Below, in pieces: positions 11,907 through 54,496 of a stretch of 64,000 bases of DNA (its first letter is position 1; the number at the start of each line of letters is the position of its first letter). Under the pieces are notes generated by a model that was not told the DNA's origin, did not search any database, and saw only the letters and a list, made by a program, of their open reading frames with translations. The stretch is from assembly GCA_965202585.1 (NCBI GenBank), contig OZ241834.1, positions 31,682,001-31,746,000 on the forward strand, written 5' to 3'. Position numbers and translations under genes: made by a program. The stretch is from Thalia democratica (lineage: Eukaryota).

Positions 11907-12049
11907 ATGATAGTTTCATGGAGCATCCTGTTGTACTTACTTGCAAGCACCCTTAAATCGGCAACGGCCCAGTGCAATGTCGGCGTTTATTCGAGGTCTC
12001 CGTGCGACTTCAGATTCCCGATAATCGACAAACTGACATGTGAACGGAG
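11907..12049 (+). CDS. First coding exon: signal peptide plus first half of trefoil-like domain 1
   Basis: aacag|ATG; [47 protein letters not shown]; donor AG|gtacgt (phase 2). Confidence 0.88.
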
Positions 12050-15000
12050 GTACGTTTTACACTGATTTAAAATTTTTGTTTTAAATAAAGTGAACTGGAT
12101 TTTTTTTCGTTACTTTAAACTATTCCTTTCAAGACTAACAGTAAAATTGATTTATTTTACTTATTTTGTAAATAGCTTATACATATTAGATTGGTTCAAA
12201 AAATAGTTTAAGTCAATTTCAAAAAGAAAAATTCAAAAAAAAAACTGTGAATAAAAAGAGTAAATACTAAAACTAAATATACTCAATAATGCTAACAATA
12301 ACTTATAACTTAAAATATGAAAAGCCCTTTTAGATATCATAAACAATTTTTTCTGCTTGTTTTAGAGTTTGTTAGAAACATAGTAATTTAGTTTATTTTT
12401 ATTTGCAGAAACTGTTGCTTCGACGACATCCCCTTTCTAGGGTTGTACGCCAGATGCTACAAAAAAGGTAAGAATACTTAGTAGTTTTAGATTAGCAGCA
12501 AATAACTTGATGTTTTTGAATTTCAGGATCAACTTCGCTGATGTTCCAGCCCTCTGTTTCCCCTCGTGAACAAAATAAACCAAGTAGTATTAATTTTTAA
12601 TTTTTATTTATTTCTTAAAATATTAAAAAATTTTTACACTTGAATGAGTAGTTTGTTAGTAGCAAACATTAAGTTATAAAAGTAATCCGCTTTAAAAGAC
12701 TTTGTTTGTTATTTTTAATTGATTGTTATTTGAAAAAAACATACAGTTTGATATTTATTTAAACCATTAACTTAAAAATGTTTTATGTATTTTAAATGTA
12801 ATCTTTATCTATAACTGTAGTTTAAAATCCATTTTAAAAATCTTGTTTTAAGTAGCTATGTGTTTCTAAAAAAAGTATTTTAAGTTTTAGAAATATTATA
12901 AACAAGAAATATATACACAAAGTATATGTTCTATATTCTAAAAGCTCATGACAGATGTAGGTTTTATTTTGGTAATCACAACAGAATTATAAACTATTGA
13001 CGGCTTTCTAAATAAGTAACAATAATTTATAACTATTTTTAGTTAAACTATATCAGAAATTAATCTGACAAAACATTTTATTTAAAAGGAGAATTGACGG
13101 TCGGGGGAAGAGAAAGCTATCGGGGCTCCCTTTTGTTGAGGAGCTGCACGAACACCGTACAACTATGTAACAGATATTTCAGATATAACAGGTACTTTTC
13201 TAAACATTAACACTGAATATAAATTGCTGTTTTATTTATACTGTGCCTACATACATTTAGTTTTATATAAAGTATTTCTGGTTATTTTCATTTGAATAAA
13301 GCTATTAAAACTTTGAAAGAGGAGCATCAACTAAAAATTGTACCTAGCAGTTAAAACTGAGTAACTTTTTTTTCGAATGCGTACACAAAAAAAAATTACA
13401 AGCAAAAACATTGAATAATTTTGCGTTTTGAAGCAACTAAAAAAAATAAATAATATGTTTTTAATTTATAAAATATTAAAATTGAAACAGAGCCGACTGC
13501 TTGAGGTTATCTTGCTGTTACATCGATGGTAATTGTTATAAGGCAGTGTTTAACAGTAAGTTTGTACAAAAGTATTTCTTGTTATTTTGTTGTTTTATTT
13601 TTAATGAATAAGATAGCTTTGTGCTCTCTTAAAAGTTAATTTTTATTTAAAGAGTTTAAAAAAAAAAGAAGCTATTACTTTATAAAGTCTTTACCTTAAA
13701 AGTAGTATATTTTCTTATCTTGAGTAAAATAAATATAAAACACTGGGTTTAATTTAAATCAAGTAGCTTACAGTTTTGAAAAGCGAAACCTAGCTAAGAT
13801 TAAGAAAAATTAAAAGGTGTCGAAGAAATAAAAAATAACTTTATTAAATATAAAATTAAACTAATTTAATAATAAAAATTAAAATTAACTTTAACGTAAA
13901 AAAAAAAGAAACAACCAAATTTTCAAATACTTTTTTAGTTCTTCACCTTCGAGATAAATGCGAACCGGGTTACGCGAATCCTCCCCAATGTAAAGGTAAT
14001 TTGAAAAATATAGTTTTGTCGGTAGTGTTTTTAGTTTTAGTCTACTAGATTTAGAAACAACACCTTTTAGTTCTAAACAAAAATTTAGCTAAAACAACAT
14101 TAAAACTAGTTATAATTTAAATCAAGTTTAACTAAACTTTAGCATTTAAATTTAATTTGTGTTTAATTACTCGACAAAAAACTAATTGTAAAATGCAAAA
14201 ACGTCAGATTTTCTTGCAAACAAATAACAATAACTCTATACATCCATTCTAATGTAAAACTAAAATTACCTGTTTCAGAAATAAACGAGTGCGAGTCCAG
14301 TCCCTGCATCAACAACAACGAAGTTTGCGTTGACAAGGTGAACGATTACGAATGCGTTTGCCCCACCGGCCTCGTTTGCGAGCAGAGTTGGTTGATTTTG
14401 TGTTAATATGTAAGAATTAACTGTATTTAAAAATTAATTAAAAAGTTGGTTGATTTTGTACAAACACTTTAGAACTTACAGTGTTTAAAAATTTATAAAA
14501 AAATGTTTTTTTTTTAGTAGAGCAGCAGTTTAAAGGTATTTTGAAAACAAATTGATATTAGATTGATTTTTTACATGTTTTAAATGTATAGTTGTTGTTA
14601 CTTGTAGTAAAATACGTAGTAATACTTTTAGTAATAAAACGTTGCATTGAGCATGTAAAATAAGTTTTGGTTGTTTGCGGTAATGCTTAACTTTTTAAAG
14701 TGTCTAAAATTATTAAAAAATATTCTTGCTGATTTTACTTTTTTTCATGTGTACATTATTGACGTTTTGTTAGTTATAAAACAACAATTTTAAAATCTAT
14801 TATGACAAAGTAACACTAATCGTTTAAATACAAACTTAATCTTTTACTTTTAGACATACTATAATTATAACGAAAATAGCTATACTTCATGTTTTACAAG
14901 TTTTATAAAAAAATAACTTTTCAAGTGTTTTAGGATTAGAAAAAATTTAAACTCTATGTAAAACTCAATTAGGTGTTAGAAGTTTTTTAATTTTTCGGTT

Positions 15001-18000
15001 TTATTTTATTCTAACTGGAAAAATAAATACGTTTTTAGTTTTATTACTTTTCAACTTAATTAATTAATGCAACTTTTGTGAACAATATTTAAAGCTCATC
15101 ATTTTATTTAGCTACAATTTTTCACAAAATTTTTTGTAGTAAAAACTTTGTTTATTTTAACGCATATTATACTTATGAAAATATAACGGTTAGTAGCTAA
15201 CAGTTTCATTTTAAAACCAGTCGAAAAATAATGTCACATTAGCTTAATTTGTTTTTTCAATTTTAAAAGTACTGTTCAGACAAATACATTGTTAAGGCTT
15301 GCGACTAAACGGAACAAAACTTCGACTGTATCGTGTATTCTTCTTGAACTAGGAAACACATGTTTTTTAATAAAAAAAACCGTTAAAACTTTTGTTTCAC
15401 TTTTAAGCTTTTCTTACATCTAAGCACCTGTTTTACTCCTGAACGTCTACATTAACCATTTATAAAGCCCTCATACACACCAATTTTGCTACCGTGAATC
15501 ACGAAAGCCTTTAACAAGTGTATTGGCGACGCTTAAGCACGCGCAACGCGATACCAAAACAAGGTGTTTATTCAGGATTAAGCCATAATGGAACAAGATT
15601 CCGTGAAACGACTGCCTCGAGGCTTTGTGATATTTCAAAAATTTTGTGCAATCTTGTTTAATGCGGATTTATACTGTTTTTATCATTTGATTTAATAACG
15701 CTTGTTTTGCTTCTTTGTTGCTTAAGTAAAATTATTTTAAATACATGTGGATTTAAGATTTTTTTAAAAGAGTTGATAAGATAAGATAACTTTATTATTG
15801 ATTGTAGAATAGTTTATTAGTTAACTTTTTTTATTATCATTAAAAAAAATAATTATAAATTTTTTTAAACTGTGATTTAGTTTTAAACACAAAAAAATAC
15901 AGACAATTTCTACAACCAAGGTTAAAGGTTTTAGTTATGATCCAAATCAAACAAAGTTCAGGGAAGCCTGCCTTTACTGACCTAGTTTAGCTGTGTATTT
16001 GTTGTTCAGTTTCACACAACGCCTGATACGAGCTGTTTAATCGTTAATCTTGAAAAGTGTTTTGCCTGCGGCTGGAAACGCGCCAGAAAAGTTTGCGAGA
16101 ATGTTGCAAGATAACCTACATGCGTCAGACAAAAATTACAGGTATGCAGATAAAAGAAGTATAAGATATTTTTGGGCTCGATGTTAATTTTGAAACATTT
16201 TCAGGATAGTCGATTTTTTCGAAGCATCTTTGATCTAATAAAGTTATTTACAAATGCTTAAATATGCCAATAAAAAAGTCCTTAAATTAAAATAAAACCG
16301 ACGGCAAAGTAAGTTTACAGGAGAAGTAGTATTACATGTATTTAAATAAATATATACAATGTATATTGTACATATACATACAGCCGTTTACTTGAATAAA
16401 TTCGGGCATCTTAACTTACATTTTTTATTTCAGACTGTGACGTCATACCCGAAAATCCCACTTACACGCTGACGTACGACGCGAGCAACGTGCTCTACAA
16501 CGCAGTGGCGGCACCAAGCGGACAAAAACACCCGAGGACGATTGCCACTCTCGAGTGCGCCACCGGCTGGTTCCTGCCTTACTCAATCACCGGATCGCTG
16601 ACGCCTGTGACATCACAGAGCTACTCGTGCGACGGGGGGAGCTTCAACGCCGGGTCGCCAGTCTGCAGACTCGGTATTGTCTTGTTTTTATTGCTTTTTT
16701 GATATTTTTGTTGCCGGTTTTTGTTTTCCAGTTTAACAACCAATATGTAATTGACGTTTGAGTTACGCCGCTTTTTAAACTAAAACCTAATACAAAACAC
16801 CAACTTAACAAAAATAACGGTGAAACATTAAAATGTCAATTTTAATTTTGTTGACTGTTAAGTAAAGTTATCCTCGGTTTAAGACGTAGTAAATCCCAAG
16901 CTACAATACAAGCTTTACTAAAAAAACTGAAAGAAGTAAAACATACTTTTCAAGCATGAATACAAAAAAAAATTTTAGTAAAAATTTGATAAACTAACTC
17001 GTTAAATAAAACAAAAAACAGGATGCCCGGGCGTGGAAGATCTGACCGACGGCAGCGTCAACTGGCCGGTGGCGGGGTTGGAACAGGTGCTGGCCGGCGA
17101 GCACGTGACCTACTCGTGCGACGGCGGGTTCACGATGGCGGCGGGCGCGGTGAACCGTATCGACTGCCAGAACGACGGCTCGCTGAGCGGCACCCTCGCC
17201 TCGCAGGGCATACAGTGCGACGCCGGTACGTTTTGTTGATAAGTTAAATTTAAATTAAATGTAAACTATGGTAGTCTTCCTTTGTAGCAGCTTCAAGTCC
17301 GAGTTTCCGGTTAAATACTGAAATTTGAGCCAGAAAAATCTGTTTAAAAAAATTTATTTCTGAGACTGGTATTTTTGAGGTTAGAACGTCTTATTGAGTG
17401 CGTTTTTTTTGGGCTGTAATTGGAATGCGTAATAGAAAACAGTATACTTTATAAAGTTATTGAAACAATCTAAAAAGTTTGATTATTTTTACCAAAAACC
17501 ATTGAGTGCTTTGCCAGTAGGTTTTTGTAAATAACTTTTATAATGTTATAACTAATTTAAGTCTTTAAATCAAAAAAATCAGTAGTAATCTCGTATAGAT
17601 AAGTTTATTTGTTTTAGGTACATGCAGAATTATTTGAATAAATATTTTAAGAGTGTTAAAGCAGCTGAGTTAAAAACCGATAAAATACTATTTAAATGTA
17701 CAATAATATTTTGCTATATTTTGGCTTCTTTACTTGCTGTCTGTGTTGACACAGTCATTATGTAAAAGTAGAGAAACACTATTCATTAAGTTTTACTTAG
17801 AACTGTTCATTAATATTTGTTGCATTGTATGATGTACTACTGTTTACCTTTTTTAAACCTTATTCAGGTAAAAGCAAATAGTATTAATTTTTAACTGAAG
17901 ACAGACTTACAGGCTGCACTTGTTAATAATAAATAATACAACTACTCCATTTCGCCTTATCAATGTTTAATTTTAGAATTAATTCTTTACTTTCGTCGTA

Positions 18001-21000
18001 TTTCAACAGAGTGCAGCACCATCCCAACTGTAACTGGTTCAACAGCGACCGTTAATGGACAAACACCCGTCACCCCGATCGATTACAATACACAGGTAGA
18101 TTATACTTGCAATTCTGGGTATTCACCCAATACGGTTCAGTCGGTGAAGTGTGGAGTGACGACTGCCGGTCAAGTTGACGTGTCAGGCGTTGCTTGTGCA
18201 AGAAGTAATCACTTTTATCTAATATTTAGTATTTACAAAAAAAATTATTCTGCAATATTTTTTGAAAAACTAAGTCTTGTTCAGGTAATACATGTCTTGT
18301 AAAAAGTAATGAATTTTTTTATTATGCTTTGTACTTTAAGGTCTATTTTTTGAAAACCATGTCTTATTTAAGTAATACAGGTCTTGTAAAAAGATAATTA
18401 AACTTATGCGCGCATTACCTAATTTAATAAGTTTCTATTTCAACTATTTTAAAACAACGATTGTAAATTTCATTTCAGTTTTTACAGTTTATACAAGAAA
18501 AGAGGGAAATCATTTTTCTTAAGTAAAACCTCTAACTGACTACTAACTAAGTTACACAGAAACATTTAACTTTAATAATAAAACTTAAACAGAATGCCTA
18601 TCAGTGGAAACTTTAACCGATGGCAGCGTGAACTATCCAATCGGGAAGACGTATGTGACGGAGGGGGAGTCGATCAGCTACTCGTGCAATAACGGTTTCA
18701 CGATGAACACGTTAGCAGTCAACAGCATCAGTTGTCAGTCCGACGGAACTCTCAGTGTCACTCTCGCCGATCAAAACATTGAATGCTTTGCTAGTACGTT
18801 TTTGTTATTAATATTTGTATTGTTATATCTACTGTTAGTCGGTAAACCAAATAAAACTAATTTGATGTAGGTGTATTCAGAATATTTTGAATTAACTTTC
18901 TAAGTGAATTAATACACAAGAGTAATAAACTATTCAAATACTATAAAAATATCATAACAAAATCGAAACATTACTCTTAGTTCTTTACTTGCTGTCTGTG
19001 TTAATACAGTTATTGTGTAGAAAGTAGAGTAATACTACATATTTGAAATTATTTATTTTTTTTTTTTCCATTGTAATATGTACTACTGTACAGCTTTTTT
19101 TTAACACTTGTTCAGGTAAAAAAAAAATAATACAAAATTTTAGGTGAAGACAAACATACAGGATACTCAACATTTGCAAATAACTACTCCGTTTTGCTCT
19201 ATAAGTATTTTATTTCACAAATAGTTCTTTATTTTTGTCGTTTTTCAACAGAGTGCAGTACCATCCCAACTGTAACTGGTGCAACAGCGGCCGTTAATGG
19301 ACAAACACCCGTCACCCCGATCGATTACAATACACAGGTAGATTATACTTGCAATTCTGGGTATTCACCCAATACGGTTCAGTCGGTGAAGTGTGGAGTG
19401 ACGACTGCCGGTCAAGTTGACGTGTCAGGCGTTGCTTGTGCAAGAAGTAATCACTTTTTTCTAATATTTAGTATTTACAAAAAAAATTATTCTGCAATAT
19501 TTTTTGAAAAACTAAGTCTTATTCAGGTAAAACAAGTCTTGTTATATAATAATTATACAAAATGTGTTTAAACTAATTTATTAAGTTTCTATTTAAACTA
19601 TTTTAAAACAACGATTGTAATTTTTACTTCAATTTTACAGTTTATTTTAAAAATGATGAAAATCAATATTCTAAAGTAAAAACTCTAACTGACTACTCAT
19701 TAAGTTACACAGAAAAATTTAGCTTTATTAATAAAACTTGAACAGAATGCCTATCAGTGGAAACTTTAACCGATGGCAGCGTGAACTATCCAGTCGGGAA
19801 GACGTATGTGACGGAGGGGGAGTCGATCAGCTACTCGTGCAATAACGGTTTCACGATGAACACGTTAGCAGTCAACAGCATCAGTTGTCAGTCCGACGGA
19901 ACTCTCAGTGCCACTCTCGCCGATCAAAACATTGAATGCTTTGCTAGTACGTTTTTGTTATTAATATTTGTATTGTTATATCTACTGTTAGTCGTAAAAC
20001 CAAATAAAACTAATTTGGTTTAGGTGTATTCAGAATATTTTGAATTAACTTTCTAAGTGAATTAATACACAAGAGTAATAAACTATTTAAATACTATAAA
20101 AATATCATAACAAAATCGAAACATTACTTTTAGTTCTTTACTTGCTGTCTGTGTTAATACAGTTATTGTGTAGAAAGTAGTGATGTACCGGACCCGGATC
20201 CGGACTTTTTTTTCAAATCAGAATCCGGCCGGAACCGGATCCGGACTTTTTTTTCAAATTAGAATCCGGCTGGAACCGGATCCGGACTTTTTTTTCAAAT
20301 TAGAGTCCGGCCGGATCCGGATATCAGACAAAAATGGCAATATTCGGCCGGACCCAGACCCGGATAGTGATTCCAGTACATCATTAGTATAAACTAGCCT
20401 GAGTCAGAATGAGGTTTTTAAAAACTAATAAAAAAAGAGCTTTAATATAATAATAAGTAGAACAACTAACCACAAGGTTTACAAATTTAGGAGTTATTTA
20501 CAATTGAAAATCTTAAATCAAGTTTTTAAACAAAATACACTAGAAAATTACAAAATATTGAAAACTGGATTAACTCAAACTCATTCAAAATCTAAAAGAA
20601 AACTAGCCTGAGTTTTTATAAAAAACTTAACTAGCTTGAGGCACTCCAAGATTTTTAAAAATTCCCAAAAATTTTCAAACTAGCAGGGTTGCCACTGTTT
20701 AAGTCAATAAAACTAGCTAGAGTGAGTATAAACAAGCCTGAGTCAGAATGAGGTTTTTAAAAACTGAAAAAATAACTTTAATCTAATAATCAGATAACAG
20801 CTAGCAAAGGTTGACAATTTGGTAGTAAAGTTGTGGACTGATTGTGGTACACTTAACTTATTAGTACTACCCATCATAATTAAATCCTACCTTATTTAAT
20901 TAATATCTAACAAATACTAAATTCTAACTGAGACTACTTTCTATAATCAGACACGACAGTTTTGAGTGATGAATCTTTTATATAAAAAACAACAAGAAAT

Positions 21001-24000
21001 ACTAGCATATACAAAGTTATTAATTACTTTGGTAATAATTTAAAAACTGGAAGCTATTTAAATCTATATCAAAAGACTTAAAACAATATACTAATAATTA
21101 AATAAAACTTCTAGTAAACAAGAAACTGTAAAATTTTACATAAATTATTAAAATATAAATCTGGTTTAAATATTTAAACAATTAAACACCAGTTGAAATA
21201 TTCACTTTAAAAAAAAACTACTTACAATAAGCATTCTCAAAAAGTTCAAGATATTTTGTTGCTTCAAGCTGCACACCAAACTAACTAACTGCTTACATAT
21301 AAACTGCCTGTCATGTTCTGATGTTTTGTAGCATCAGTATTTAGTTTGAAACATTTCGTCATATGATTCTCATTGGCTCGTACATTCAACCGTATTAACT
21401 CTAAATATTCTCTGAGCTCAACTTTAAACATCAAATAATGCAAGTATTCACTCCAACGTTTTCCATTTTACAACATATGTGAAGAGTTGCATTTCTAAAT
21501 GTTTATTTCATAGTTTAAATGTAAACAAGTGTAAATTAGTCACGTGTACAAGATGAGCCAATCGGGGTAGGTGTTTGATTTTAAGTGACGAAAATGACTC
21601 TTATTAAATTACACAGGGTTTGTTTTTGAAAAAAAACTTTTCAGTATGCTTTTTTTTACTAACTAGATCCGGGTCCCGACTTTTTTTAAAAATTAGAATC
21701 CGGCCAGAACCGGGTCCAGACTTTATTTACAAATTAGAATCCGGCCGGACCCGGATATCAGACAAAAATGGCAATATCCGGCCGGACCCGGACCCGGATA
21801 GTGAGTCCGGTACATCACTAGTAGAAAGTCGAGTAATACTACATATTTGAAATTATTCATTTTTTTTTTTCATTGTAGTATGTACTACTGTACAGCTTTT
21901 TTTAACACTTGTTCAGGTAAAAAAAAATAATACAAAATTTTAAGTGAAGACAAACATACAGGATACTCAACATTTGCAAATAAGTACTCCGTTTTGCTCT
22001 ATAAGTATTTTATTTCACAATTAGTTCTTTATTTTTGTCGTTTTCCAACAGAGTGCAGTACCATCCCAACTGTAACTGGTGCAACAGCGGCCGTTAATGG
22101 ACAAACACCCGTCACCCCGATCGATTACAATACACAGGTAGATTATACTTGCAATTCTGGGTATTCACCCAATACGGTTCAGTCGGTGAAGTGTGGAGTG
22201 ACGACTGCCGGTCAAGTTGACGTGTCAGGCGTTGCTTGTGCAAGAAGTAATCACTTTTTTCTAATATTTAGTATTTACAAAAAAAATTATTCTGCAATAT
22301 TTTTTGAAAAACTAAGTCTTATTCAGGTAAAACAAGTCTTGTTATATAATGATTATACAAAGTGTGTTTAAACTAATTTATTAAGTTTCTGTTTAAACTA
22401 TTTTAAAACAACGATTGTAAATTTTACTTCAATTTTACAGTTTATTTTAAAAATGATGAAAATCAATATTGTAAAGTAAAAACTCAAACTGACTACTCAT
22501 TAAGTTACACAGAAAAATTTAGCTTTATTAATAAAACTTGAACAGAATGCCTATCAGTGGAAACTTTAACCGATGGCAGCGTGAACTATCCAGTCGGGAA
22601 GACGTATGTGACGGAGGGGGAGTCGATCAGCTACTCGTGCAATAACGGTTTCACGATGAACACGTTAGCAGTCAACAGCATCAGTTGTCAGTCCGACGGA
22701 ACTCTCAGTGCCACTCTCGCCGATCAAAACATTGAATGCTTTGCTAGTACGTTTTTGTTATTAATATTTGTATTGTTATATCTACTGTTAGTCGTAAAAC
22801 CAAATAAAACTAATTTGGTTTAGGTGTATTCAGAATATTTTGAATTAACTTTCTAAGTGAATTAATACACAAGAGTAATAAACTATTTAAATACTATAAA
22901 AATATCATAACAAAATCGAAACATTACTCTTAGTTCTTTACTTGCTGTCTGTGTTAATACAGTTATTGTGTAGAAAGTAGTGATGTACCGGACCCGGATC
23001 CGGACTTTTTTTTCAAATCAGAATCCGGCCGGAACCGGATCCGGACTTTTTTTTCAAATTAGAATCCGGCCGGAACCGGATCCGGACTTTTTTTTCAAAT
23101 TAGAGTCCGGCCGGAACCGGATTCGGACTTTTTTTTTTCAGTTTAGAGTCCGGCCGGATCCGGATATCAGACAAAAATGGCAATATTCGGCCGGACCCAG
23201 ACCCGGATAGTGATTCCAGTACATCATTAGTATAAACTAGCCTGAGTCAGAATGAGGTTTTTAAAAACTAATAAAAAAAGAGCTTTAATCTAATAATAAG
23301 TAGAACAACTAACCACAAGGTTTACAAATTTAGGAGTTATTTACAATTAAAAATCTTAAATCAAGTTTTTAAACAAAATACACTAGAAAATTACAAAATA
23401 TTGAAAACTGGATTAGCTCAAACTCATTCAAAATCTAAAAGAAAACTAGCCTGAGTTTTTATAAAAAACTTAACTAGCTTAAGGCACTCCAAGATTTTCT
23501 AAAATTCCCAAAAATTTTCAAACTAGCAGGGTTGCCACTGTTTAAGTCAATAAAACTAGCTAGAGTGAGTATAAACAAGCCTGAGTCAGAATGAGGTTTT
23601 TAAAAACTGAAAAAATAACTTTAATCTAATAATCAGATAACAGCTAGCAAAGGTTGACAATTTGGTAGTAAAGTTGTGGACTGATTGTGGTACACTTAAC
23701 TTATTAGTACTACCCATCATAATTAAATCCTACCTTATTTAATTAATATCTAACAAATACTAAATTCTAACTGAGACTACTTTCTATAATCAGACACGAC
23801 AGTTTTGAGTGATGAATCTTTTATATAAAAAACAACAAGAAATACTAGCATATACAAAGTTATTAATTACTTTGGTAATAATTTAAAAACTGGAAGCTAT
23901 TTAAATCTATATCAAAAGACTTAAAACAATATACTAATAATTAAATAAAACTTCTAGTAAACAAGAAACTGTAAAATTTTACATAAATTATTCAAATATA

Positions 24001-33000: not shown

Positions 33001-36000
33001 GTCCGACGGAACTCTCAGTGCCACTCTCGCCGATCAAAACATTGAATGCTTTGCTAGTACGTTTTTGTTATTAATATTTGTATTGTTATATCTACTGTTA
33101 GTCGTTAAATCAAATAAAACTTATTTGATTTATGTGTATGCAGAATATTTTGAATTATCCTTCTAAGTGAATTAATGCACAAGAGTAATAAACTATTTAT
33201 ATACTATTTTTACAATAAAAATCGAAACAATATTCTTAGTTCTTTACTTGCTGTCTGTGTTAATACAGTCATTATGTAGAAAGTAGAGTAATGCTACATG
33301 TTATGAATTATTCATTATTTTTTTTTTGTGTTGTAATATGTACTACTGTACAGCTTTTTTTAACACTTGTTCAGGTAAAAAATAATAATACAAAATTTTA
33401 AGTGAAGACAAACATACAGGATACTCAACATTTGCAAATAACTACTCCGTTTTGCTCTATAAGTATTTTATTTCACAATTAGTTCTTTATTTTTGTCGTT
33501 TTTCAACAGAGTGCAGTACCATCCCAACTGTAACTGGTGCAACAGCGGCCGTTAATGGACAAACACCCGTCACCCCGATCGATTACAATACACAGGTAGA
33601 TTATACTTGCAATTCTGGGTATTCACCCAATACGGTTCAGTCGGTGAAGTGTGGAGTGACGACTGCCGGTCAAGTTGACGTGTCAGGCGTTGCTTGTGCA
33701 AGAAGTAATCACTTTTTTCTAATATTTAGTATTTACAAAAAACTAATTTTGCAATATTTTTTGAAAAACTAAGTCTTATTCAGGTAAAACAAGTCTTGTT
33801 ATATAATGATTATACAAAATGTGTTTAAACTAGTTTATTAAGTTTCTATTTAAACTATTTTAAAACGACGATTGTAAATTTTACTTCAATTTTACAGTTT
33901 ATTTTAAAAATGATGAAAATCAATATTCTAAAGTAAAAACTCTAACTGACTACTTATTAAGTTACACAGATACAATTAACTTTATGAATAAAACTTGAAC
34001 AGAATGCCTATCAGTGGAAACTTTGACCGATGGCAGCGTGAACTATCCAGGCGGGAAGACGTATGTGACGGAGGGGGAGTCGATCAGCTACTCGTGCAAT
34101 AACGGTTTCACGATGAACACGTTAGCAGTCAACAGCATCAGTTGTCAGTCCGACGGAACTCTCAGTGCCACTCTCGCCGATCAAAACATTGAATGCTTTG
34201 CTAGTACGTTTTTGTTATTAATATTTGTATTGTTATTTCTACTGTTAGTCGTTAAACCAAATAAAACTAATTTGATTTATGTGTGTGCAGAATATTTTGA
34301 ATTAACTTTCCAAGTGAATTAATACACAAAAGTAATAAACTATTCAAATTCTATCAAAATATCATAACAAAATCGAAACATTGCTCTTAGTTCTTTACTT
34401 GCCCGTCTGTGTTAATTAGTGATGTACCGGACCCACAATTTCGGATCCGGCCGGACCCGGACCCGGACTTTTTTTTCAAGTTAGAATCCGGCCGGAACCG
34501 GACCCGGACTTTTTTTTCAAATTAGAATCCGGCCGGAACCGGACCCGGACTTTTTTTTCAAATTAGAATCCGGCCGGAACCGGATCCGGACATTTTTTTC
34601 AAATTAGAATCCGGCCGGATCCGGATATCAAACAAAAATGGCAATATCCGGCCGGACCCGGACCCGGATAGTGAGTCCGCTACATCACTAGTATAAACTA
34701 GCCTGAGTCAAAATGAGGTTTTTAAAAACTAAAAAAAAAGAACTTTAATCTAATAATAAGAAGAACAGCTAGCCACAAGGTTTACAAATTTAGGTGTTAT
34801 TTACAGTTAAAAATCTGAAATCAAGTTCTTAAATAAAATACACTAGAAAATTAGAAAATATTGAAAACTGGATCAGCTCAAACTCATTCAAAATCTAAAA
34901 GAAAACTTGCCTGTGTTTTTATAAAAAACTAAACTAGCCTGAGGCAGTCCAAGATTTTCTAAAATTCCCAAAAACTTTGAAAATAGCAGGGTTGCCATTG
35001 TTTAAGTCAATAAAACTAGCTAGAGTGAGTATAAACAAGCCTGAGTCAGAATTCAACCGTATTAACTCTAAATATTCTCTGAGCTCAACTTTAAACAATA
35101 AATAATGCAAGTATTCATTCCAAAGTTCTTAATTTTACAACATTAAAACAGTTGCATTTCTGAAATGCTTATTTCATAGTTTAAATGCAAACAAATGTAA
35201 ATTAGTCACGTGTACAAAATGAGCCAATCACGGTAGGTGTTTAATTTTAACTGACGAAAATGACTCTTATTAATTTACACAGGGTTTATTTTTGAAAAAA
35301 TACTTTTCAGTATGCTTTATTTTACTAACTAGATCCGGGTCCGGCCGGATCTCTGTTAGGATCCGGCCGGACCCGGACCCGGACTTTTTTTTCAAATTAG
35401 AATCCGGCCGGAACCGGACCCGGACTTTTTTTTCAAATTAGAATCCGGCCGGAACCGGATCCGGACTTTTTTTTCAAATTAGAGTCCGGCCGGATCCGGA
35501 TATCAGACAAAAATGGCAATATCCGGCCGGACCCGGACCCGGATAGTGAGTCCGGTACATCACTAGTGTTAATACAGTTATTGTGTAGGAAGTAGTGTAA
35601 AACTACATATTTGAAATTATTCATTATTTTTTTTTTCATTGTAGTATGTACTACTGTACAGCTATTTTTTAACACTTGTTCAGGTAAAAAATAATAATAC
35701 AAAATTTTAAGTGAAGACAAACATACAGGATACTCAACATTTGCAAATAACTACTCCGTTTTGCTCTATAAGTATTTTACTTCACAATTAGTTCTTTATT
35801 TTTGTCGTTTTTCAACAGAGTGCAGTACCATCCCAACTGTAACTGGTGCAACAGCGACCGTTAATGGACAAACACCCGTCACCCCGATCGATTATAATAC
35901 ACAGGTAGATTATACTTGCAATTCTGGGTATTCACCCAATACGGTTCAGTCGGTGAAGTGTGGAGTGACGACTGCCGGTCAAGTTGACGTGTCAGGCGTT

Positions 36001-39000
36001 GCTTGTGCAAGAAGTAATCACTTTTTTCTAATATTTAGTATTTACAAATAAATATATTCTGCAATATTTTTTGAAAAACTAAGTCTTATTTAGGTAAAAC
36101 AAGTCTTGTTATATAATGATTATACAAAAGGTGTTTAAACTAATTTATTAAGTTTCTATTTAAACTATTTTGAAACAACGATTGTAAATTTTACTTCAAT
36201 TTTACAGTTTATTTTAAAAATGATGAAAATCAATATTCTAAAGTAAAAACTCTAACTGACTACTTATTAAGTTACACAGAAACAATTAACTTTATGAATA
36301 AAACTTGAACAGAATGCCTATCAGTGGAAACTTTGACCGATGGCAGCGTGAACTATCCAGTCGGGAAGACGTATGTGACGGAGGGGGAGTCGATCAGCTA
36401 CTCGTGCAATAACGGTTTCACGATGAACACGTTAGCAGTCAACAGCATCAGTTGTCAGTCCGACGGAACTCTCAGTGCCACTCTCGCCGATCAAAACATT
36501 GAATGCTTTGCTAGTAGGTTTTTGTTATTAATATTTGTATTGTTATATCTACTGTTAGTCGTTAAACCAAATAAAACTTATTTGATTTAGGTGTGTGCAG
36601 AATATTTTGAATTAACTTTCCAAGTGAATTAATACACAAGAGTAATAAACTATTCAAATACTATAAAAATATCATAACAAAATCGAAACATTACTCTTAG
36701 TTCTTTACTTGCTGTCTGTGTTAATACAGTTATTGTGTAGGAAGTAGTGTAAAACTACATATTTGAAATTATTTATTATTTTTTTTTTCATTGTAGTATG
36801 TACTGCTGTACAGCTTTTTTTAACACTTGTTCAGGTAAAAAATAATAATACAAAATTTTAAGTGAAGACAAACATACAGGATACTCAACATTTGCAAATA
36901 ACTACTCCGTTTTGCTCTATAAGTATTTTATTTCACAATTAGTTCTTTATTTTTGTCGTTTTTCAACAGAGTGCAGTACCATCCCAACTGTAACTGGTGC
37001 AACAGCGACCGTTAATGGACAAACACCCGTCACCCCGATCGATTACAATACACAGGTAGATTATACTTGCAATTCTGGGTATTCACCCAATACGGTTCAG
37101 TCGGTGAAGTGTGGAGTGACGACTGCCGGTCAAGTTGACGTGTCAGGCGTTGCTTGTGCAAGAAGTAATCACTTTATTCTAATATTTAGTATTTACAAAA
37201 AAAATTATTCTGCAATATTTTTTGAAAAACTAAGTCTTATTCAGGTAAAACAAGTCTTGTTATATAATGATTATACAAAATGTGTTTAAACTAATTTATT
37301 AAGTTTCTATTTAAACTATTTTAAAACAACGATTGTAAATTTTACTTCAATTTTACAGTTTATTTTAAAAATGATGAAAATCAATATTGTAAAGTAAAAA
37401 CTCAAACTGACTACTCATTAAGTTACACAGAAAAATTTAGCTTTATTAATAAAACTTGAACAGAATGCCTATCAGTGGAAACTTTAACCGATGGCAGCGT
37501 GAACTATCCAGTCGGGAAGACGTATGTGACGGAGGGGGAGTCGATCAGCTACTCGTGCAATAACGGTTTCACGATGAACACGTTAGCAGTCAACAGCATC
37601 AGTTGTCAGTCCGACGGAACTCTCAGTGCCACTCTCGCCGATCAAAACATTGAATGCTTTGCTAGTACGTTTTTGTTATTAATATTTGTATTGTTATATC
37701 TACTGTTAGTCGTAAAACCAAATAAAACTAATTTGGTTTAGGTGTATTCAGAATATTTTGAATTAACTTTCTAAGTGAATTAATACACAAGAGTAATAAA
37801 CTATTTAAATACTATAAAAATATCATAACAAAATCGAAACATTACTCTTAGTTCTTTACTTGCTGTCTGTGTTAATACAGTTATTGTGTAGAAAGTAGTG
37901 ATGTACCGGACCCGGATCCGGACTTTTTTTTCAAATCAGAATCCGGCCGGAACCGGATCCGGACTTTTTTTTCAAATTAGAATCCGGCTGGAACCGGATC
38001 CGGACTTTTTTTTCAAATTAGAGTCCGGCCGGATCCGGATATCAGACAAAAATGGCAATATTCGGCCGGACCCAGACCCGGATAGTGATTCCAGTACATC
38101 ATTAGTATAAACTAGCCTGAGTCAGAATGAGGTTTTTAAAAACTAATAAAAAAAGAGCTTTAATCTAATAATAAGTAGAACAACTAACCACAAGGTTTAC
38201 AAATTTAGGAGTTATTTACAATTAAAATCTTAAATCAAGTTTTTAAACAAAATACACTAGAAAATTACAAAATATTGAAAACTGGATTAGCTCAAACTCA
38301 TTCAAAATCTAAAAGAAAACTAGCCTGAGTTTTTATAAAAAACTTAACTAGCTTGAGGCACTCCAAGATTTTCTAAAATTCCCAAAAATTTTCAAACTAG
38401 CAGGGTTGCCACTGTTTAAGTCAATAAAACTAGCTAGAGTGAGTATAAACAAGCCTGAGTCAGAATGAGGTTTTTAAAAACTGAAAAAATAACTTTAATC
38501 TAATAATCAGATAACAGCTAGCAAAGGTTGACAATTTGGTAGTAAAGTTGTGGACTGATTGTGGTACACTTAACTTATTAGTACTACCCATCATAATTAA
38601 ATCCTACCTTATTTAATTAATATCTAACAAATACTAAATTCTAACTGAGACTACTTTCTATAATCAGACACGACAGTTTTGAGTGATGAATCTTTTATAT
38701 AAAAAACAACAAGAAATACTAGCATATACAAAGTTATTAATTACTTTGGTAATAATTTAAAAACTGGAAGCTATTTAAATCTATATCAAAAGACTTAAAA
38801 CAATATACTAATAATTAAATAAAACTTCTAGTAAACAAGAAACTGTAAAATTTTACATAAATTATTAAAATATAAATCTGGTTTAAATATTTAAACAATT
38901 AAACACCAGTTGAAATATTCACTTTAAAAAAAAAACTACTTACAATAAGCACTCTCAAAAAGTTCAAGATATTTTGTTGCTTCAAGCTGCACACCAAACT

Positions 39001-42000
39001 AACTAACTGCTTACATATAAACTGCCTGTCATGTTCTGATGTTTTGTTGCATCAGTATTTAGTTTGAAACATTTCGTCATATGATTCTCATTGGCTCGTA
39101 CATTCAACCGTATTAACTCTAAATATTCTCTGAGCTCAACTTTAAACATCAAATAATGCAAGTATTCACTCCAACGTTTTCAATTTTACAACATATGTGA
39201 AGAGTTGCATTTCTAAATGTTTATTTCATAGTTTAAATGTAAACAAGTGTAAATTAGTCACGTGTACAAGATGAGCCAATCGGGGTAGGTGTTTAATTTT
39301 AAGTAACGAAAATGACTCTTATTAAATTACACAGGGTTTGTTTTTGAAAAAAAACTTTTCAGTATGCTTTTTTTTACTAACTAGATCCGGGTCCCGACTA
39401 TTTTTAAAAATTAGAATCCGGCCAGAACCGGGTCCAGACTTTATTTACAAATTAGAATCCGGCCGGACCCGGATATCAGACAAAAATGGCAATATCCGGC
39501 CGGACCCGGACCCGGATAGTGAGTCCGGTACATCACTAGTAGAAAGTCGAGTAATACTACATATTTGAAATTATTCATATTTTTTTTTTCATTGTAGTAT
39601 GTACTACTGTACAGCTTTTTTTAACACTTGTTCAGGTAAAAAAAAATAATACAAAATTTTAAGTGAAGACAAACATACAGGATACTCAACATTTGCAAAT
39701 AACTACTCCGTTTTGCTCTATAAGTATTTTATTTCACAAATAGTTCTTTATTTTTGTCGTTTTTTAACAGAGTGCAGTACCATCCCAACTGTAACTGGTG
39801 CAACAGCGACCGTTAATGGACAAACACCCGTCACCCCGATCGATTACAATACACAGGTAGATTATACTTGCAATTCTGGGTATTCACCCAATACGGTTCA
39901 GTCGGTGAAGTGTGGAGTGACGACTGCCGGTCAAGTTGACGTGTCAGGCGTTGCTTGTGCAAGAAGTAATCACTTTTTTTCTAATATTTAGTATTTAAAA
40001 AAAACTAATTTTGCAATACTTTTTGAAAAACTAAGTCTTATTCAGGTAAAACAAGTCTTGTTATATAATGATTATACAAAATGTGTTTAAACTAATTTAT
40101 TAAGTTTCTATTAAAACTATTTTAAAACAACGATTGTAAATTTTACTTCAGTTTTACAATTTATTTTTAAAATGATGAAAATCAATATTCTAAAGTAAAA
40201 ACTCTAACTGACTACTTATTAAGTTACACAGAAACAATTAACTTTATGAATAAAACTTGAACAGAATGCCTATCAGTGGAAAGTTTAACCGATGGCAGCG
40301 TGAACTATCCAGTCGGGAAGACGTATGTGACGGAGGGGGAGTCGATCAGCTACTCGTGCAATAACGGTTTCACGATGAACACGTTAGCAGTCAACAGCAT
40401 CAGTTGTCAGTCCGACGGAACTCTCAGTGCCACTCTCGCCGATCAAAACATTGAATGCTTTGCTAGTACGTTTTTGTTATTAATATTTGTATTGTTATAT
40501 CTACTGTTAGTCGTTAAACCAAATAAAACTAATTTGATTTAGGTGTATTCAGAATAATTTGAATTAAGTTTCTAAGTGAATTAATACACAAGAGTAATAA
40601 ACTATTCAAATACTATAAAAATATAATAACAAAATCGAAACATTACTTTTAGTTTTTTACTTGCTGTCTGATTAATACAGTTATTGTGTAGAAAGTAGAG
40701 TAATACTACATATTTGAAATTATTCATGATTTTTTTTGCATTGTAATATGTACTACTGTACAGCTTTTTATTAACACTTGTTCAGGTAAAAAAAAGAACA
40801 CAAAATTTTAAGTGAAGACAAACATACAGGATACTCAACATTTGCAAATAACTACTCCGTTTTGCTCTATAAGTATTTTATTTCACAAATAGTTCTTTAT
40901 TTTTGTCGTTTTTCAACAGAGTGCAGCACCATCCCAACTGTAACTGGTGCAACAGCGACCGTTAATGGACAAACACCCGTCACCCCGATCGATTACAATA
41001 CACAGGTAGATTATACTTGCAATTCTGGGTATTCACCCAATACGGTTCAGTCGGTGAAGTGTGGAGTGACGACTGCCGGTCAAGTTGACGTGTCAGGCGT
41101 TGCTTGTGCAAGAAGTAATGATTTTTTTTCTAATATTTAGTATTTACAAAAAACTAATTTTGCAATATTTTTTGAAAAACTAAGTCTTATTCAGGTAAAA
41201 CAAGTCTTGTTATATAATGATTATACAAAATGTGTTTAAACTAATTTATTAAGTTTCTATTAAAACTATTTTAAAACAACGATTGTAAGTTTTACTTCAA
41301 TTTTACAGTTTATTTTAAAAATGATGAAAATCAATATTCTAAAGTAAAAACTCTAACTGACTATTTATTTAGTTACACAGAAACATTTAACTTTATCACC
41401 AAAACTTGAACAGAATGCTTATCAGTGGAAACTTTAACCGATGGCAGCGTGAACTATCCAGTCGGGAAGACGTATGTGACGGAGGGGGAGTCGATCAGCT
41501 ACTCGTGCAATAACGGTTTCACGATGAACACGTTAGCAGTCAACAGCATCAGTTGTCAGTCCGACGGAACTCTCAGTGCCACTCTCGCCGATCAAAACAT
41601 TGAATGCTTTGCTAGTACGTTTTTGTTATTAATATTTGTATTGTTATTTCTACTGTTAGTCGTTAAACCAAATAAAACTTATTTGATTTAGGTGTGTGCA
41701 GAATATTTTGAATTAACTTTCCAAGTGAATTAATACACAAGAGTAATAAACTATTCAAATACTATAAAAATATCATAACAAAATCGAAACATTACTCTTA
41801 GTTCTTTAGTTGCTGTCTGTGTTAATACAGTTATTGTGTAGGAAGTAGTGTAAAACTACATATTTGAAATTATTCATTATTTTTTTTTTCATTGTAGTAT
41901 GTACTGCTGTACAGCTTTTTTTAACACTTGTTCAGGTAAAAAATAATAATACAAAATTTTAAGTGAAGACAAACATACAGGATACTCAACATTTGCAAAT

Positions 42001-42773
42001 AACTACTCCGTTTTGCTCTATAAGTATTTTATTTCACAATTAGTTCTTTATTTTTGTCGTTTTTCAACAGAGTGCAGTACCATCCCAACTGTAACTGGTG
42101 CAACAGCGACCGTTAATGGACACACACCCGTCACCCCGATCGATTACAATACACAGGTAGATTATACTTGCAATTCTGGGTATTCACCCAATACGGTTCA
42201 GTCGGTGAAGTGTGGAGTGACGACTGCCGGTCAAGTTGACGTGTCAGGCGTTGCTTGTGCAAGAAGTAATCACTTTTTTCTAATATTTATTATTTACAAA
42301 AAAATATATTCTGCAACATTTTTTTTTAAAAACAAGTCTATTTAGGTAATACATGTTTTGTTATAAAACATTTAAAGTTCGTGGCGCCTTAACTAATTTA
42401 TTAAGTTTATTTTTAACTGTTGAAAATAAACAATTGTAAGTTTTACTTCAGTTTTTAAAGCTTATACAAAAAAAAAGATGAAAATCAATATTCTAAAGTA
42501 AAAACTCTAACTGACTACTCATTTAGTTACACAGAAATATTTAACTTTATTAATAAAACTTGAACAGAATGCCTATCAGTGGAAACTTTAACCGATGGCA
42601 GCGTGAACTATCCAGTCGGGAAGACGTATGTGACGGAGGGGGAGTCGATCAGCTACTCGTGCAATAACGGTTTCACGATGAACACGTTAGCAGTCAACAG
42701 CATCAGTTGTCAGTCCGACGGAACTCTCAGTGCCACTCTCGCCGATCAAAACATCGAGTGCTTTGAAAGTTAA
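11907..42773 (+). CDS. Gene 1: multi-exon secreted protein, signal peptide - 2x trefoil-like - cbEGF - 32x Sushi/CCP-like (about 2,326 aa)
   Basis: Exons 11907-12049, 12409-12467, (12527-12583), 13089-13191, 13491-13555, 13939-13995, 14279-14386, 16434-16673 and 17022-17225, then 15 x (195-nt B + 201-nt A). All introns are GT-AG with compatible phases. Spliced length is 6981 nt, open to TAA at 42771-42773. Confidence 0.88.
12409..12467 (+). CDS. Second half of trefoil/P-type-like domain 1
   Basis: tttgcag|; [20 protein letters not shown]; |gtaaga. With the previous exon it gives the six-Cys C..C..C..CC..C trefoil pattern, including CCFD. Confidence 0.88.
12527..12583 (+). CDS. Possible 57-nt linker exon (S/P-rich)
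   Basis: tttcag|; [19 protein letters not shown]; weak donor gtagta. Symmetric phase 1-1, so the frame holds with or without it. Confidence 0.55.
13089..13555 (+). CDS. Two exons (13089-13191, 13491-13555): linker plus trefoil-like domain 2
   Basis: [34 protein letters not shown] / [21 protein letters not shown]. Six Cys with a CC pair, split by a phase-2 intron as in domain 1. Donors gtactt and gtaagt. Confidence 0.8.
13939..14386 (+). CDS. Two exons (13939-13995, 14279-14386): partial EGF-like plus calcium-binding EGF
   Basis: [19 protein letters not shown] / [36 protein letters not shown]; matches the C-x-D-x4-Y-x-C-x-C Asx-hydroxylation pattern. Confidence 0.88.
16434..16673 (+). CDS. 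Unique Sushi/CCP-like exon 1
   Basis: ttttcag|; CDVIPENP...[12 protein letters not shown]...[18 protein letters not shown]; |gtattg; 240 nt, phase 1-1, four Cys. Confidence 0.85.
17022..17225 (+). CDS. Unique Sushi/CCP-like exon 2 (diverged relative of the A exon)
   Basis: [18 protein letters not shown]...[11 protein letters not shown]...[22 protein letters not shown]; |gtacgt; 204 nt, phase 1-1. Confidence 0.88.
18010..18793 (+). CDS. Unit 1: CCP-B exon 18010-18204 + CCP-A exon 18593-18793
   Basis: B = [14 protein letters not shown]...VDYTCNSGY...VKCG...VACAR; A = [18 protein letters not shown]...SYSCNNGF...ISCQSDG...IECFA; long B-A intron (388 nt). Confidence 0.9.
19252..19946 (+). CDS. 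Unit 2: CCP-B 19252-19446 + CCP-A 19746-19946
   Basis: Intact phase 1-1 exons, cag|...|gt. Confidence 0.9.
20178..21820. mobile_element. Composite hAT MITE, copy 1 (intron after unit 2)
   Basis: TIR TAGTGATGTACCGG / CCGGTACATCACTA; 8-bp TSD GTAGAAAG; empty site visible in other units; 41-bp CCGG-rich subterminal repeats. Confidence 0.95.
22052..22746 (+). CDS. Unit 3: CCP-B 22052-22246 + CCP-A 22546-22746
   Basis: Intact phase 1-1 exons. Confidence 0.9.
22978..24664. mobile_element. Composite hAT MITE, copy 2 (intron after unit 3)
   Basis: Same TIR and TSD GTAGAAAG; one extra 41-bp repeat on the left. Confidence 0.95.
24896..25591 (+). CDS. Unit 4: CCP-B 24896-25090 + CCP-A 25391-25591
   Basis: Intact phase 1-1 exons; B variant TVIG. 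Confidence 0.9.
26043..26738 (+). CDS. Unit 5: CCP-B 26043-26237 + CCP-A 26538-26738
   Basis: Intact phase 1-1 exons; A variant ESLT, donor gtaggt. Confidence 0.9.
27189..27871 (+). CDS. Unit 6: CCP-B 27189-27383 + CCP-A 27671-27871
   Basis: Intact phase 1-1 exons; B variant TVYG, A variant ESLT. Confidence 0.9.
28327..29108 (+). CDS. Unit 7: CCP-B 28327-28521 + CCP-A 28908-29108
   Basis: Intact; B variant TTSG; long B-A intron (386 nt) like unit 1. Confidence 0.9.
29567..30261 (+). CDS. Unit 8: CCP-B 29567-29761 + CCP-A 30061-30261
   Basis: Intact phase 1-1 exons. Confidence 0.9.
30493..32130. mobile_element. Composite hAT MITE, copy 3 (intron after unit 8)
   Basis: Same TSD GTAGAAAG; right TIR CCGGTGCATCACTA (1 mismatch). 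Confidence 0.95.
32363..33056 (+). CDS. Unit 9: CCP-B 32363-32557 + CCP-A 32856-33056
   Basis: Intact; B variant PIVTG. Confidence 0.9.
33510..34203 (+). CDS. Unit 10: CCP-B 33510-33704 + CCP-A 34003-34203
   Basis: Intact; A variant YPGG. Confidence 0.9.
34417..35565. mobile_element. Composite hAT MITE, copy 4: divergent, internally deleted, independent insertion (intron after unit 10)
   Basis: Same TIR but TSD GTGTTAAT (34409-34416, 35566-35573); 1,149 bp; deletion junction near 35052. Confidence 0.95.
35819..36513 (+). CDS. Unit 11: CCP-B 35819-36013 + CCP-A 36313-36513
   Basis: Intact; donor gtaggt. Confidence 0.9.
36970..37664 (+). CDS. Unit 12: CCP-B 36970-37164 + CCP-A 37464-37664
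   Basis: Intact phase 1-1 exons. Confidence 0.9.
37896..39538. mobile_element. Composite hAT MITE, copy 5 (intron after unit 12)
   Basis: Same TIR and TSD GTAGAAAG; 1,643 bp like copy 1. Confidence 0.95.
39771..40465 (+). CDS. Unit 13: CCP-B 39771-39965 + CCP-A 40265-40465
   Basis: Intact; A variant ESLT. Confidence 0.9.
40920..41614 (+). CDS. Unit 14: CCP-B 40920-41114 + CCP-A 41414-41614
   Basis: Intact phase 1-1 exons. Confidence 0.9.
42071..42773 (+). CDS. Unit 15 (terminal): CCP-B 42071-42265 + terminal CCP-A 42568-42773
   Basis: A ends ATC GAG TGC TTT GAA AGT TAA (IECFES*) instead of ATT GAA TGC TTT GCT A|gtacgt, and is followed by sequence unrelated to the array introns. Confidence 0.85.
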
Positions 42774-53948: not shown

Positions 53949-54099
53949 TTTATAACAGTTTTGTCTATTTTTACAACTAACAAAATATAAACAAGTACGT
54001 TTAGGTGTTTAAGTTTAATTTTTTAAAATTTTATTGTGTTCATTTTTCTTAAAAAAATGTTTTTTAAATACCAAATACAGCATTATGTCTGGGTGCACG

Positions 54100-54496
54100 A
54101 CTATTCAAATTCTGACAATTCAAATTCTGACAATTCAAATTCGGACAATTCAAATTCCGACAACTCAAACTCGACAATTCAAATTCCGACAATTCAAACT
54201 CCGACAACTCAAAATTGGACAATTCAAATTCCGACAACTCAAACTCGGACAATTAAAATTCCGACAACTCAAATTCAGACAATTCAAATTCCGACAACTC
54301 AAATTTGGACAACTCAAATTTAGACAATTCGAATTCCGACAACTTAAATTCGGACAATTCAAATTCCGACAACTCAAATTTGGACAATTCAAATTTCGAC
54401 AATTCAAATTCGGACAATTTAAATTCGGACAACTCAAATTTGGACAATTCAAACTACGACAACTCAAATTCGGATAATTCAAACTACGACAATTGA
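54100..54496 (+). repeat. 15-bp minisatellite (AATTCAAATTCCGAC)n, left arm
   Basis: About 26 imperfect copies; source of the ORF-track peptides at 54034-54496. Confidence 0.95.

Follow-up and report, generated by a model that had tools for sequence, protein, structure and literature searches.

A trefoil-headed CCP-repeat gene of Thalia democratica is a lengthened member of a lineage-specific family

Introduction

Chains of complement control protein (CCP, or sushi) modules are a recurrent building principle of extracellular proteins: they serve as a spacer in selectins, and each module measures about 3.5-4 nm in factor H and complement receptor 1 (CR1). The long homologous repeats of CR1 and the kringle IV-2 repeats of apolipoprotein(a) further illustrate how in-frame, multi-exon units can be repeated within one gene, evolve in concert and set the length of the product through their number. 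The trefoil, or P-domain, is another such module, with a fold of three loops held by disulfides 1-5, 2-4 and 3-6. Trefoil factors (TFFs) are characterized as secreted lectins for mucin glycans (PMC7221086), and TMEM190 is a trefoil-bearing sperm protein (PMC8674074); in tunicates, the house secreted by the pelagic Oikopleura contains CCP, C-lectin and EGF_CA proteins, the lectin domains of which were proposed to contact the cellulose scaffold (PMC3390340). Here, we describe a gene located in a stretch of 64,000 nucleotides (nt) of the Thalia democratica genome (C10:31,682,001-31,746,000, hereafter the window), in which a trefoil-bearing head is joined to a rod of 32 four-cysteine modules. All parts of this gene are familiar extracellular modules and the gene is not a new kind of system; it is a mosaic sushi-repeat protein gene with an intragenic tandem exon array and, as the following analysis indicates, a derived member of a family that had not been described before.

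Gene structure

The gene was rebuilt independently and comprises 39 exons (11907-42773, plus strand), with AG...GT at every border. The spliced frame of 6,981 nt encodes 2,326 amino acids (aa), with a predicted mass of about 250 kDa, and ends at a single TAA stop (42771-42773)—exactly the length of the open frame that a previous, sequence-only reading of the locus had put forward. The window is A+T-rich, with 21-26% G+C outside genes, and the exons are richer in G+C. From the N-terminus onward, the order of modules is signal peptide, trefoil, a six-cysteine module, half-EGF, EGF, a module of type X, a module termed B0 and 15 consecutive A,B pairs; the head, with about 175 residues, consists of the trefoil, a linker, the six-cysteine module, the half-EGF and an EGF of calcium-binding type. 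The array is formed by a genomic unit of about 1,150 bp, present in 15 copies from 17.8 to 42.8 kb. The same reading had described a strictly alternating pair of intact repeat exons with four cysteines each, and this description holds in full: 15 A exons (195 nt) and 15 B exons (201 nt) follow one another without exception, and all 30 are intact and open, are bordered by AG/GT, lie in phase 1-1 and encode four cysteines, with the reading frame closing two codons past the last B module. Moreover, the 32 module exons are all in phase 1-1 with one module per exon, the exon arrangement by which CCP modules are recognized.

The complete protein contains 148 cysteine residues (20 in the head and four in each of the 32 modules), an even count that leaves no free cysteine for dimerization. 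The sole hydrophobic stretch is the N-terminal signal peptide, with the maximum at residue 1, and the protein lacks a membrane span, so that secretion, likewise proposed from the sequence alone, is also what the rebuilt model predicts. We also observed that N-x-S/T sequons are absent from the 2,326 residues despite an Asn content of 7.4% and a Ser+Thr content of 24%; this absence may reflect avoidance of N-glycosylation, with the repeats making the effective sample small. Within the 2-kb, A+T-rich intron 7, a single-copy segment stands out by its G+C content (Table 1). It matches nothing in Rfam, contains no frame-compatible exon and occurs nowhere else in the genome. A missed exon or an RNA gene was rejected as an explanation on the grounds that the segment is unique and unmatched in Rfam and that the paralogues and a transcript-derived relative (L053, described below) splice the EGF straight to module X; the intron contains one small ATG-led open reading frame, which terminates in the wrong phase. 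The segment could be a regulatory element.

A paralogous family in the same genome

Genome-wide comparisons were performed on the 802-Mb assembly (1,833 contigs). Local tblastn searches of the spliced head against individual loci revealed at least five other loci that keep the same seven head exons in the same order. Exon-1-like sequences were found at C2:57.45 Mb, C2:59.74 Mb, C1:88.66 Mb, C1:88.80 Mb and C6:27.07 Mb, each of them located just upstream of X-type exons. These X-type exons form arrays with a period of about 2.7 kb at C1:88.66 Mb, C1:88.78 Mb (opposite strand), C6:27.04 Mb and C2:57.45 Mb, and a lone X exon is present at C2:59.74 Mb. Behind the head, the paralogues carry alternating X and B-type exons, with the B-type exons being 60-67% identical to those of the present gene and the X exons 41-45% identical to its module 1. 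Additionally, CTLD-like (C-type-lectin-domain-like) exons were detected in all five paralogues and are terminal at four loci. The corresponding domain scores 17.6 bits against the Pfam Lectin_C cut-off of 22.6, yet aligns across the full model, and inspection of the alignment by eye revealed no EPN/QPD or WND motif. The usual plan of the family consists of the head, 0 to about 9 X-B pairs and a CTLD-like tail.

The present gene shares with its paralogues the seven-exon head, followed by paired four-cysteine modules with a B-type second member. The paralogues, however, carry X-B pairs (0, 1 or about 4-9) that end in, or repeat with, a CTLD-like domain, whereas this gene has one X-B0 pair followed by 15 A-B pairs and is devoid of a CTLD—of which no trace was found in the 64-kb window, including the region downstream of the stop, even at an E value of 50. 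Module A resembles the CCP exons of other loci on C5 more than it resembles X. With 0, 2, roughly 12-18 or 32 modules behind the head across the family, the rod described here is the longest. The gene is, then, a derived, tail-less and lengthened member of a lineage-specific and previously undescribed family.

Several of these loci display features of their own. At C2:57.45 Mb (57447000-57466999), the repeat unit comprises four modules (EGF, X, B and CTLD-like), which places several lectin-like domains along the rod, and the region C1:88.65-88.81 Mb contains two family members in inverted orientation, separated by about 150 kb and almost identical in their exons. We also examined trefoil exons elsewhere in the assembly. 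A canonical trefoil exon (23777766) lies amid diverse CCP exons of the same strand, two of them A-like, at C5:23762000-23791999, and trefoil matches occur near A-like exons at C5:11.9-12.1 Mb and C5:25.3-25.5 Mb. Since trefoil exons are embedded in other CCP genes (e.g., at C5:23.777 Mb), the pairing of trefoil and CCP modules is recurrent in this genome.

Relatives outside the genome and expression of the family

An exhaustive HMMER search with module B returned generic sushi proteins and, among them, a 291-aa protein with 80% identity. This protein and its 363-aa cluster mate (P0001/P0151) are spliced B-A-B-A-B(-A) chains from MERC, a catalogue assembled with Plass from 775 Tara Oceans eukaryotic metatranscriptomes (bioRxiv 10.1101/386110). 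Their A and B units share 81-86% identity with the array; since the best other A-like exon in the present genome is only 63% identical, these sequences come from another taxon. Two further relatives include the head. The intron-free JGI contig L053 (2,062 nt) encodes a complete member of 483 aa in one frame, in the order signal, trefoil, six-cysteine module, half-EGF, EGF, X, B and CTLD-like; its nearest genomic counterpart is the locus at C2:59.74 Mb, and its junctions agree with the exon model of the present gene. In P0153 (296 aa), the head is joined straight to a CTLD-like domain, with no CCP module in between. Together, the sequences of the relatives bear out the exon junctions at the level of homologues and demonstrate expression of the family.

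Apart from these sequences, a full-length query against 5.8 billion proteins returned nothing else and no named gene with this architecture, and a literature search on trefoil and sushi modules, in tunicates or in general, yielded no relevant description. The view that the combination of domains is not that of a recognized named gene was thereby borne out, but the existence of an unnamed family had escaped the sequence-only reading.

Domain identities

The peptide encoded by exons 1 and 2 is a trefoil, as evidenced by a PF00088 score of 29.0 bits against a cut-off of 21, with six cysteines and model positions 1-42 of 43 covered; the trefoil of the family also aligned with the canonical trefoil exons of this genome (hhalign E value of 5e-5). 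The second six-cysteine module, encoded by exons 4 and 5, gave no Pfam Trefoil match. When compared with trefoil profiles in hhalign, 9-14 columns around a C-x4-CC-[FY]-x-D core were aligned (E values of 0.17 and 0.005), loops 1 and 3 being shorter (x6 and x5), and a weak match to the TMEM190 profile (E values of 0.009 and 0.05) lies below any threshold. A protein search with the 59-aa peptide spanning the six-cysteine module and the half-EGF found no candidates within a length window that hides longer proteins, and a language-model search with the six-cysteine module gave no usable match. Two trefoil-like domains had been proposed for the head; the first is well founded, and for the second the resemblance is confined to the C-x4-CC-aromatic-x-D core. 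Similarly, the proposed calcium-binding EGF stands as an EGF but not as a match to the calcium-binding model: exon 7 passes PF00008 (26.5 bits against 21.5) and fails PF07645 EGF_CA (18.1 bits against 27), the calcium-type consensus—an N-terminal x-I-N-E-C and C-x-D-x4-Y-x-C—being present by eye only.

Regarding the rod, B0 (30.6 bits) and B (28.4 bits) pass the Pfam Sushi model (PF00084, cut-off of 20.7), and A, with 20.0 bits, is marginal. In searches against the PDB, all 19 matches of the A profile were CCP proteins (best E value of 6.8e-6), and the B profile likewise matched CCP proteins only, with CR2 at 9e-17; factor H, CR2, DAF, CR1 and beta2-GPI were the only proteins matched by the two profiles. 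A and B are also similar to each other (BLASTP E value of 6e-5). As judged by these profiles, modules B and B0 are CCPs and module A, just short of the Pfam cut-off, is probably one as well. Type X presents a different picture. None of the ten X exons of the family matches Sushi, the X profile has no PDB match and its hhalign comparison with B gave a probability of 3%. Module X is CCP-like by cysteine spacing, exon phase and language-model neighbors only, the last being Sushi clusters with a score of 0.95 and low recognition. AlphaFold2 predictions of X reached a pLDDT of 38.9 from a single sequence and 44.1 from a 10-sequence alignment—too poor for a fold search. Hence, the 32 CCP-like modules of the sequence-only reading are reduced to 31 (B0 and the 15 A,B pairs), with X set aside.

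Two further ideas about X were tried and rejected. An origin of A from X is unsupported: the BLASTP E value is 0.16, and the nearest kin of A are CCP exons on C5, with 50-63% identity. A relationship with Ig-like domains was suggested by antibody matches (E value of 0.004 or worse), which were gone with a cleaner alignment; the cysteine spacing is also a misfit.

History of the array

Within the genome, the array exons differ from one another by 0-6 nt and are 98-100% alike as protein, whereas the introns of the units differ by 1-20%. On average, pairs of units differ by 0.018 at silent sites, 0.007 at non-silent sites and 0.096 in the A-to-B intron; divergence at silent sites is about five times lower than in the 300-nt intron that separates A from B. 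Even for units 1, 7 and 15, with A-to-B intron differences of 0.16-0.20, silent sites still differ by 0.015-0.035, and identity shifts abruptly at the exon borders. The pN/pS ratio (non-silent to silent) is about 0.4, and non-silent changes account for about half of the between-unit variants. The units show about 84% protein identity (about 15% divergence) to the units of the relative P0001/P0151. We read this pattern as concerted evolution acting mainly on exons while introns drift, because the units are near-identical within the genome but about 15% away from those of the relative; short, possibly G+C-biased conversion tracts may be the means.

The introns also record how the array grew. Four copies of a dispersed repeat that is non-coding, carries subterminal 41-bp tandem repeats at either end and is flanked by an approximately 11-bp target duplication are found in B-to-A introns (Table 1), and this repeat has more than 3,900 candidate copies genome-wide. 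In units 2, 3, 8 and 12, the repeat occupies the same site with the same duplicated flank of about 11 bp, and the four array copies are 98-100% alike, compared with 88-94% to copies elsewhere. The shared site and flank, together with the greater likeness of the four copies to one another than to others, show that one insertion was multiplied by unit duplication. Furthermore, a longer version of the A-to-B intron is common to units 1 and 7, where it differs by 2.6%, and a transposon-bearing unit comes after each of the two, a pattern indicative of block duplication. No two units are identical. That the units can be told apart argues against assembly duplication, as a complement to long reads and not in their place.

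A neighboring gene downstream of the array is built from four four-cysteine exons and has the same C-terminal ending. Compared with unit 15, its B exon is identical, while the 3' flank differs by 3.7%, the A exon by 3.1% and the A-to-B intron by 27%. This neighbor has none of the head exons of the family, and no convincing start or signal-peptide exon was found for it. Further downstream in the window lie two inverted arrays of a 15-bp tandem repeat, which may mark where a mobile element begins and ends.

Table 1. Coordinates of the gene, its array and other features of the window
Feature	Coordinates	Strand	Remarks
Exon 1	11907..12049	+	start codon, signal peptide (~21 aa, A-T-A before the cut), N-terminal trefoil half
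Exon 2	12409..12467	+	C-terminal trefoil half (CC-F-D-D ... C-Y); same junction in L053
Exon 3	12527..12583	+	linker, kept among paralogues
Exon 4	13089..13191	+	linker and first two Cys of the six-Cys module
Exon 5	13491..13555	+	rest of the six-Cys module (C-x4-CC-Y-I-D-G-x-C-Y)
Exon 6	13939..13995	+	two-Cys half-EGF loop; best-conserved exon of the head, 74-81% identity to paralogues
Exon 7	14279..14386	+	EGF of calcium-binding type, phase 1-1; Pfam EGF 26.5 bits
Segment of intron 7	15280..16140		single-copy, 31-45% G+C
Module 1 (X type)	16434..16673	+	79 aa, four Cys, CCP-like candidate
Module 2 (B0)	17022..17225	+	CCP; 60% identical to B units, BLASTP 4e-27 to B
15-unit A-B array	18010..42773	+	last B continues into stop 42771-42773
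Unit layout			A exon 195 nt, intron ~300 nt, B exon 201 nt, intron ~455 nt
A exon starts	18010, 19252, 22052, 24896, 26043, 27189, 28327, 29567, 32363, 33510, 35819, 36970, 39771, 40920, 42071	+
B exon starts	18593, 19746, 22546, 25391, 26538, 27671, 28908, 30061, 32856, 34003, 36313, 37464, 40265, 41414, 42568	+
1.64-kb dispersed repeat, unit 2	20181-21820		B-to-A intron
1.64-kb dispersed repeat, unit 3	22981-24664		B-to-A intron
1.64-kb dispersed repeat, unit 8	30496-32130		B-to-A intron
1.64-kb dispersed repeat, unit 12	37899-39538		B-to-A intron
Separate insertion, ~1.15 kb	34417..35568		B-to-A intron of unit 10, different position
Downstream neighbor gene	45453-47926	+	four-Cys exons at 46126 and 46788 (both CCP-like), 47230 (A) and 47721 (B)
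15-bp tandem repeat arrays	54098-54494 and 57111-57480		~25 copies each, inverted, ~2.6 kb apart

Function and alternative explanations

The anatomy of the gene, its family, the history of the array and the expression of relatives are matters of observation, from which we infer a binding partner, a role for the rod and a tissue setting. Probably, the locus is a real, intact gene, a derived member of its family, that encodes a secreted, trefoil-headed CCP rod residing in a carbohydrate-rich matrix. In this member, X has been replaced by the CCP of type A, the two-exon A-B unit has been expanded 15-fold by tandem duplication, and the lectin-like tail is absent; whole units, one of them carrying a transposon, were duplicated again while the exons were held almost identical. 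The trefoil head may bind an extracellular glycan or mucin-like partner, a suggestion made because trefoil factors are lectins for mucin glycans. The CCP chain could then act as a semi-rigid spacer or as a multivalent surface of about 0.1 micrometer, as estimated from the module length in factor H and CR1, with the number of units setting its length. The analogy with the CCP, C-lectin and EGF_CA proteins of the Oikopleura house suggests that the protein may belong to a secreted matrix rich in carbohydrate (that of the mucous filter, house or tunic). The notion of a small head on a variable spacer, raised in the sequence-only reading, holds at the level of the family, where the head is kept in at least five paralogues and two relatives' transcripts, with 0-32 modules behind it.

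Several points weigh against this assignment. The transcripts of the relatives cover the B|A, A|B and head junctions for homologues that are 80-90% identical, not for the locus of this species; Plass joins short reads and can mis-join repeats, which makes the order and number of units in P0001/P0151 unreliable. With the units diverged by 1-2%, intact exons are expected even without selection. The missing CTLD-like tail could mark a truncated, possibly functionless offshoot of the family. Moreover, CCPs typically have a conserved Trp between cysteines three and four, whereas A and B are entirely devoid of Trp (0.1% of the whole protein), and the folds of module X and of the second trefoil are putative, both being candidates from sequence patterns.

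Among the alternatives, a soluble innate-immune molecule resembling complement regulators is unlikely, but it is the one that survives best. The CCP chain would be its binding surface, for microbes or factors of complement type, the head would provide attachment or recognition, and both the fast duplication of the family and the turnover of its repeats would stem from host-pathogen pressure. This proposal gains from the nearest solved kin of A and B being complement regulators or receptors throughout, although CCP similarity at this level (20-30 bits) is generic and uninformative as to ligands. A multi-copy family with rods varied in type and length would also suit an immune role, as would the share of non-silent changes among inter-unit variants (about half); the units, however, are homogenized and not diversified (pN of 0.007, 98-100% protein identity), and the protein has no membrane anchor or effector domain.

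As a rather improbable extension, the family could be composed of molecular rulers, in which trefoil-lectin and C-type-lectin-like ends are spaced by a CCP rod. Duplication of exon pairs would tune the length of the rod and thereby set fiber spacing or mesh size, with gene conversion limited to exons; the present gene would be a one-ended, extra-long cap, brush or spacer. If this were true, rod length would set the mesh size in the filter, house or tunic of a pelagic tunicate.

It is quite improbable that the gene encodes a gamete-coat or self/non-self recognition protein, comparable to the trefoil-bearing zona pellucida (ZP) proteins and the sperm protein TMEM190, with repeat number or sequence contributing to specificity for the species or the individual. 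The resemblance of the six-cysteine module to the TMEM190 profile (E values of 0.009 and 0.05) is under any threshold, and neither a ZP domain nor a membrane anchor was found in the protein; the divergence of about 15% at the protein level from the units of the nearest relative, combined with homogeneity within the genome, would be in keeping with such a role, but the EGF-CCP-CTLD make-up of the family suggests matrix or lectin proteins. Least probable of all is that the locus misleads, its unit number being inflated or mis-ordered by assembly or the gene being a young, untranscribed and truncated duplicate in decay: for all that the assembly holds no second haplotype copy for comparison, that the CTLD-like tail present in every other genomic member is missing and that intactness is uninformative at 1-2% divergence, every unit is distinguishable by its introns, unit-specific indels and two kinds of insertion, the four transposon copies differ by 0-2% where the usual assembly error is collapse and not expansion, a relative expresses a like A-B chain, and pN/pS is about 0.4.

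With a secreted matrix protein as the preferred reading, the novelty lies in a coherent, expressed and lineage-specific family that places a trefoil/EGF head and a lectin-like tail around a rod of 0-32 modules. As a natural series, the family lends itself to the question of how spacer length matters for a matrix protein secreted by a filter feeder. Furthermore, the locus is a clear-cut example of concerted evolution ending at the borders of exons, and it is informative about the parts played by gene conversion, G+C content and selection in shaping repeat arrays.

Comparison with known systems

In common with TFFs, the gene described here has a domain with the six-cysteine pattern and the CC-aromatic-D core, present as one copy. 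TFFs are one- or two-domain peptides, whereas here the trefoil heads a chain of 2,326 aa with no free cysteine. The second loop, 9-10 residues in the classical trefoil, has 11 residues in this case. The oikosins of Oikopleura are likewise secreted CCP, C-lectin and EGF/EGF_CA matrix proteins that often form lineage-specific multigene families, as set out in part of PMC3390340; however, the 5.8-billion-protein search disclosed no sequence relationship, and neither a trefoil nor a long CCP array figures among the domains listed in that part of the source (PMC3390340).

The selectins and the G3 region of lecticans (versican and aggrecan) combine the same EGF, C-type lectin and CCP modules as the family, and the language-model neighbors of L053 are versican, aggrecan and selectin clusters, with scores of 0.85-0.87 that rank as leads. 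The order is reversed in the family, with the lectin-like domain at the C-terminus, and an N-terminal trefoil head is added. Besides, the family has neither a membrane span nor a proteoglycan core. The present gene is devoid of any CTLD and departs from the selectin plan of an N-terminal C-type lectin, EGF, CCPs and a membrane span.

Finally, as in CR1 and apolipoprotein(a), a multi-exon unit is repeated head to tail within one gene, with all copies in frame. The unit of CR1 comprises seven CCPs, while that of the present gene consists of two CCP exons in about 1.15 kb and, in contrast to both CR1 and apolipoprotein(a), its homogeneity is confined to the exons, between which the introns differ by 5-20%.

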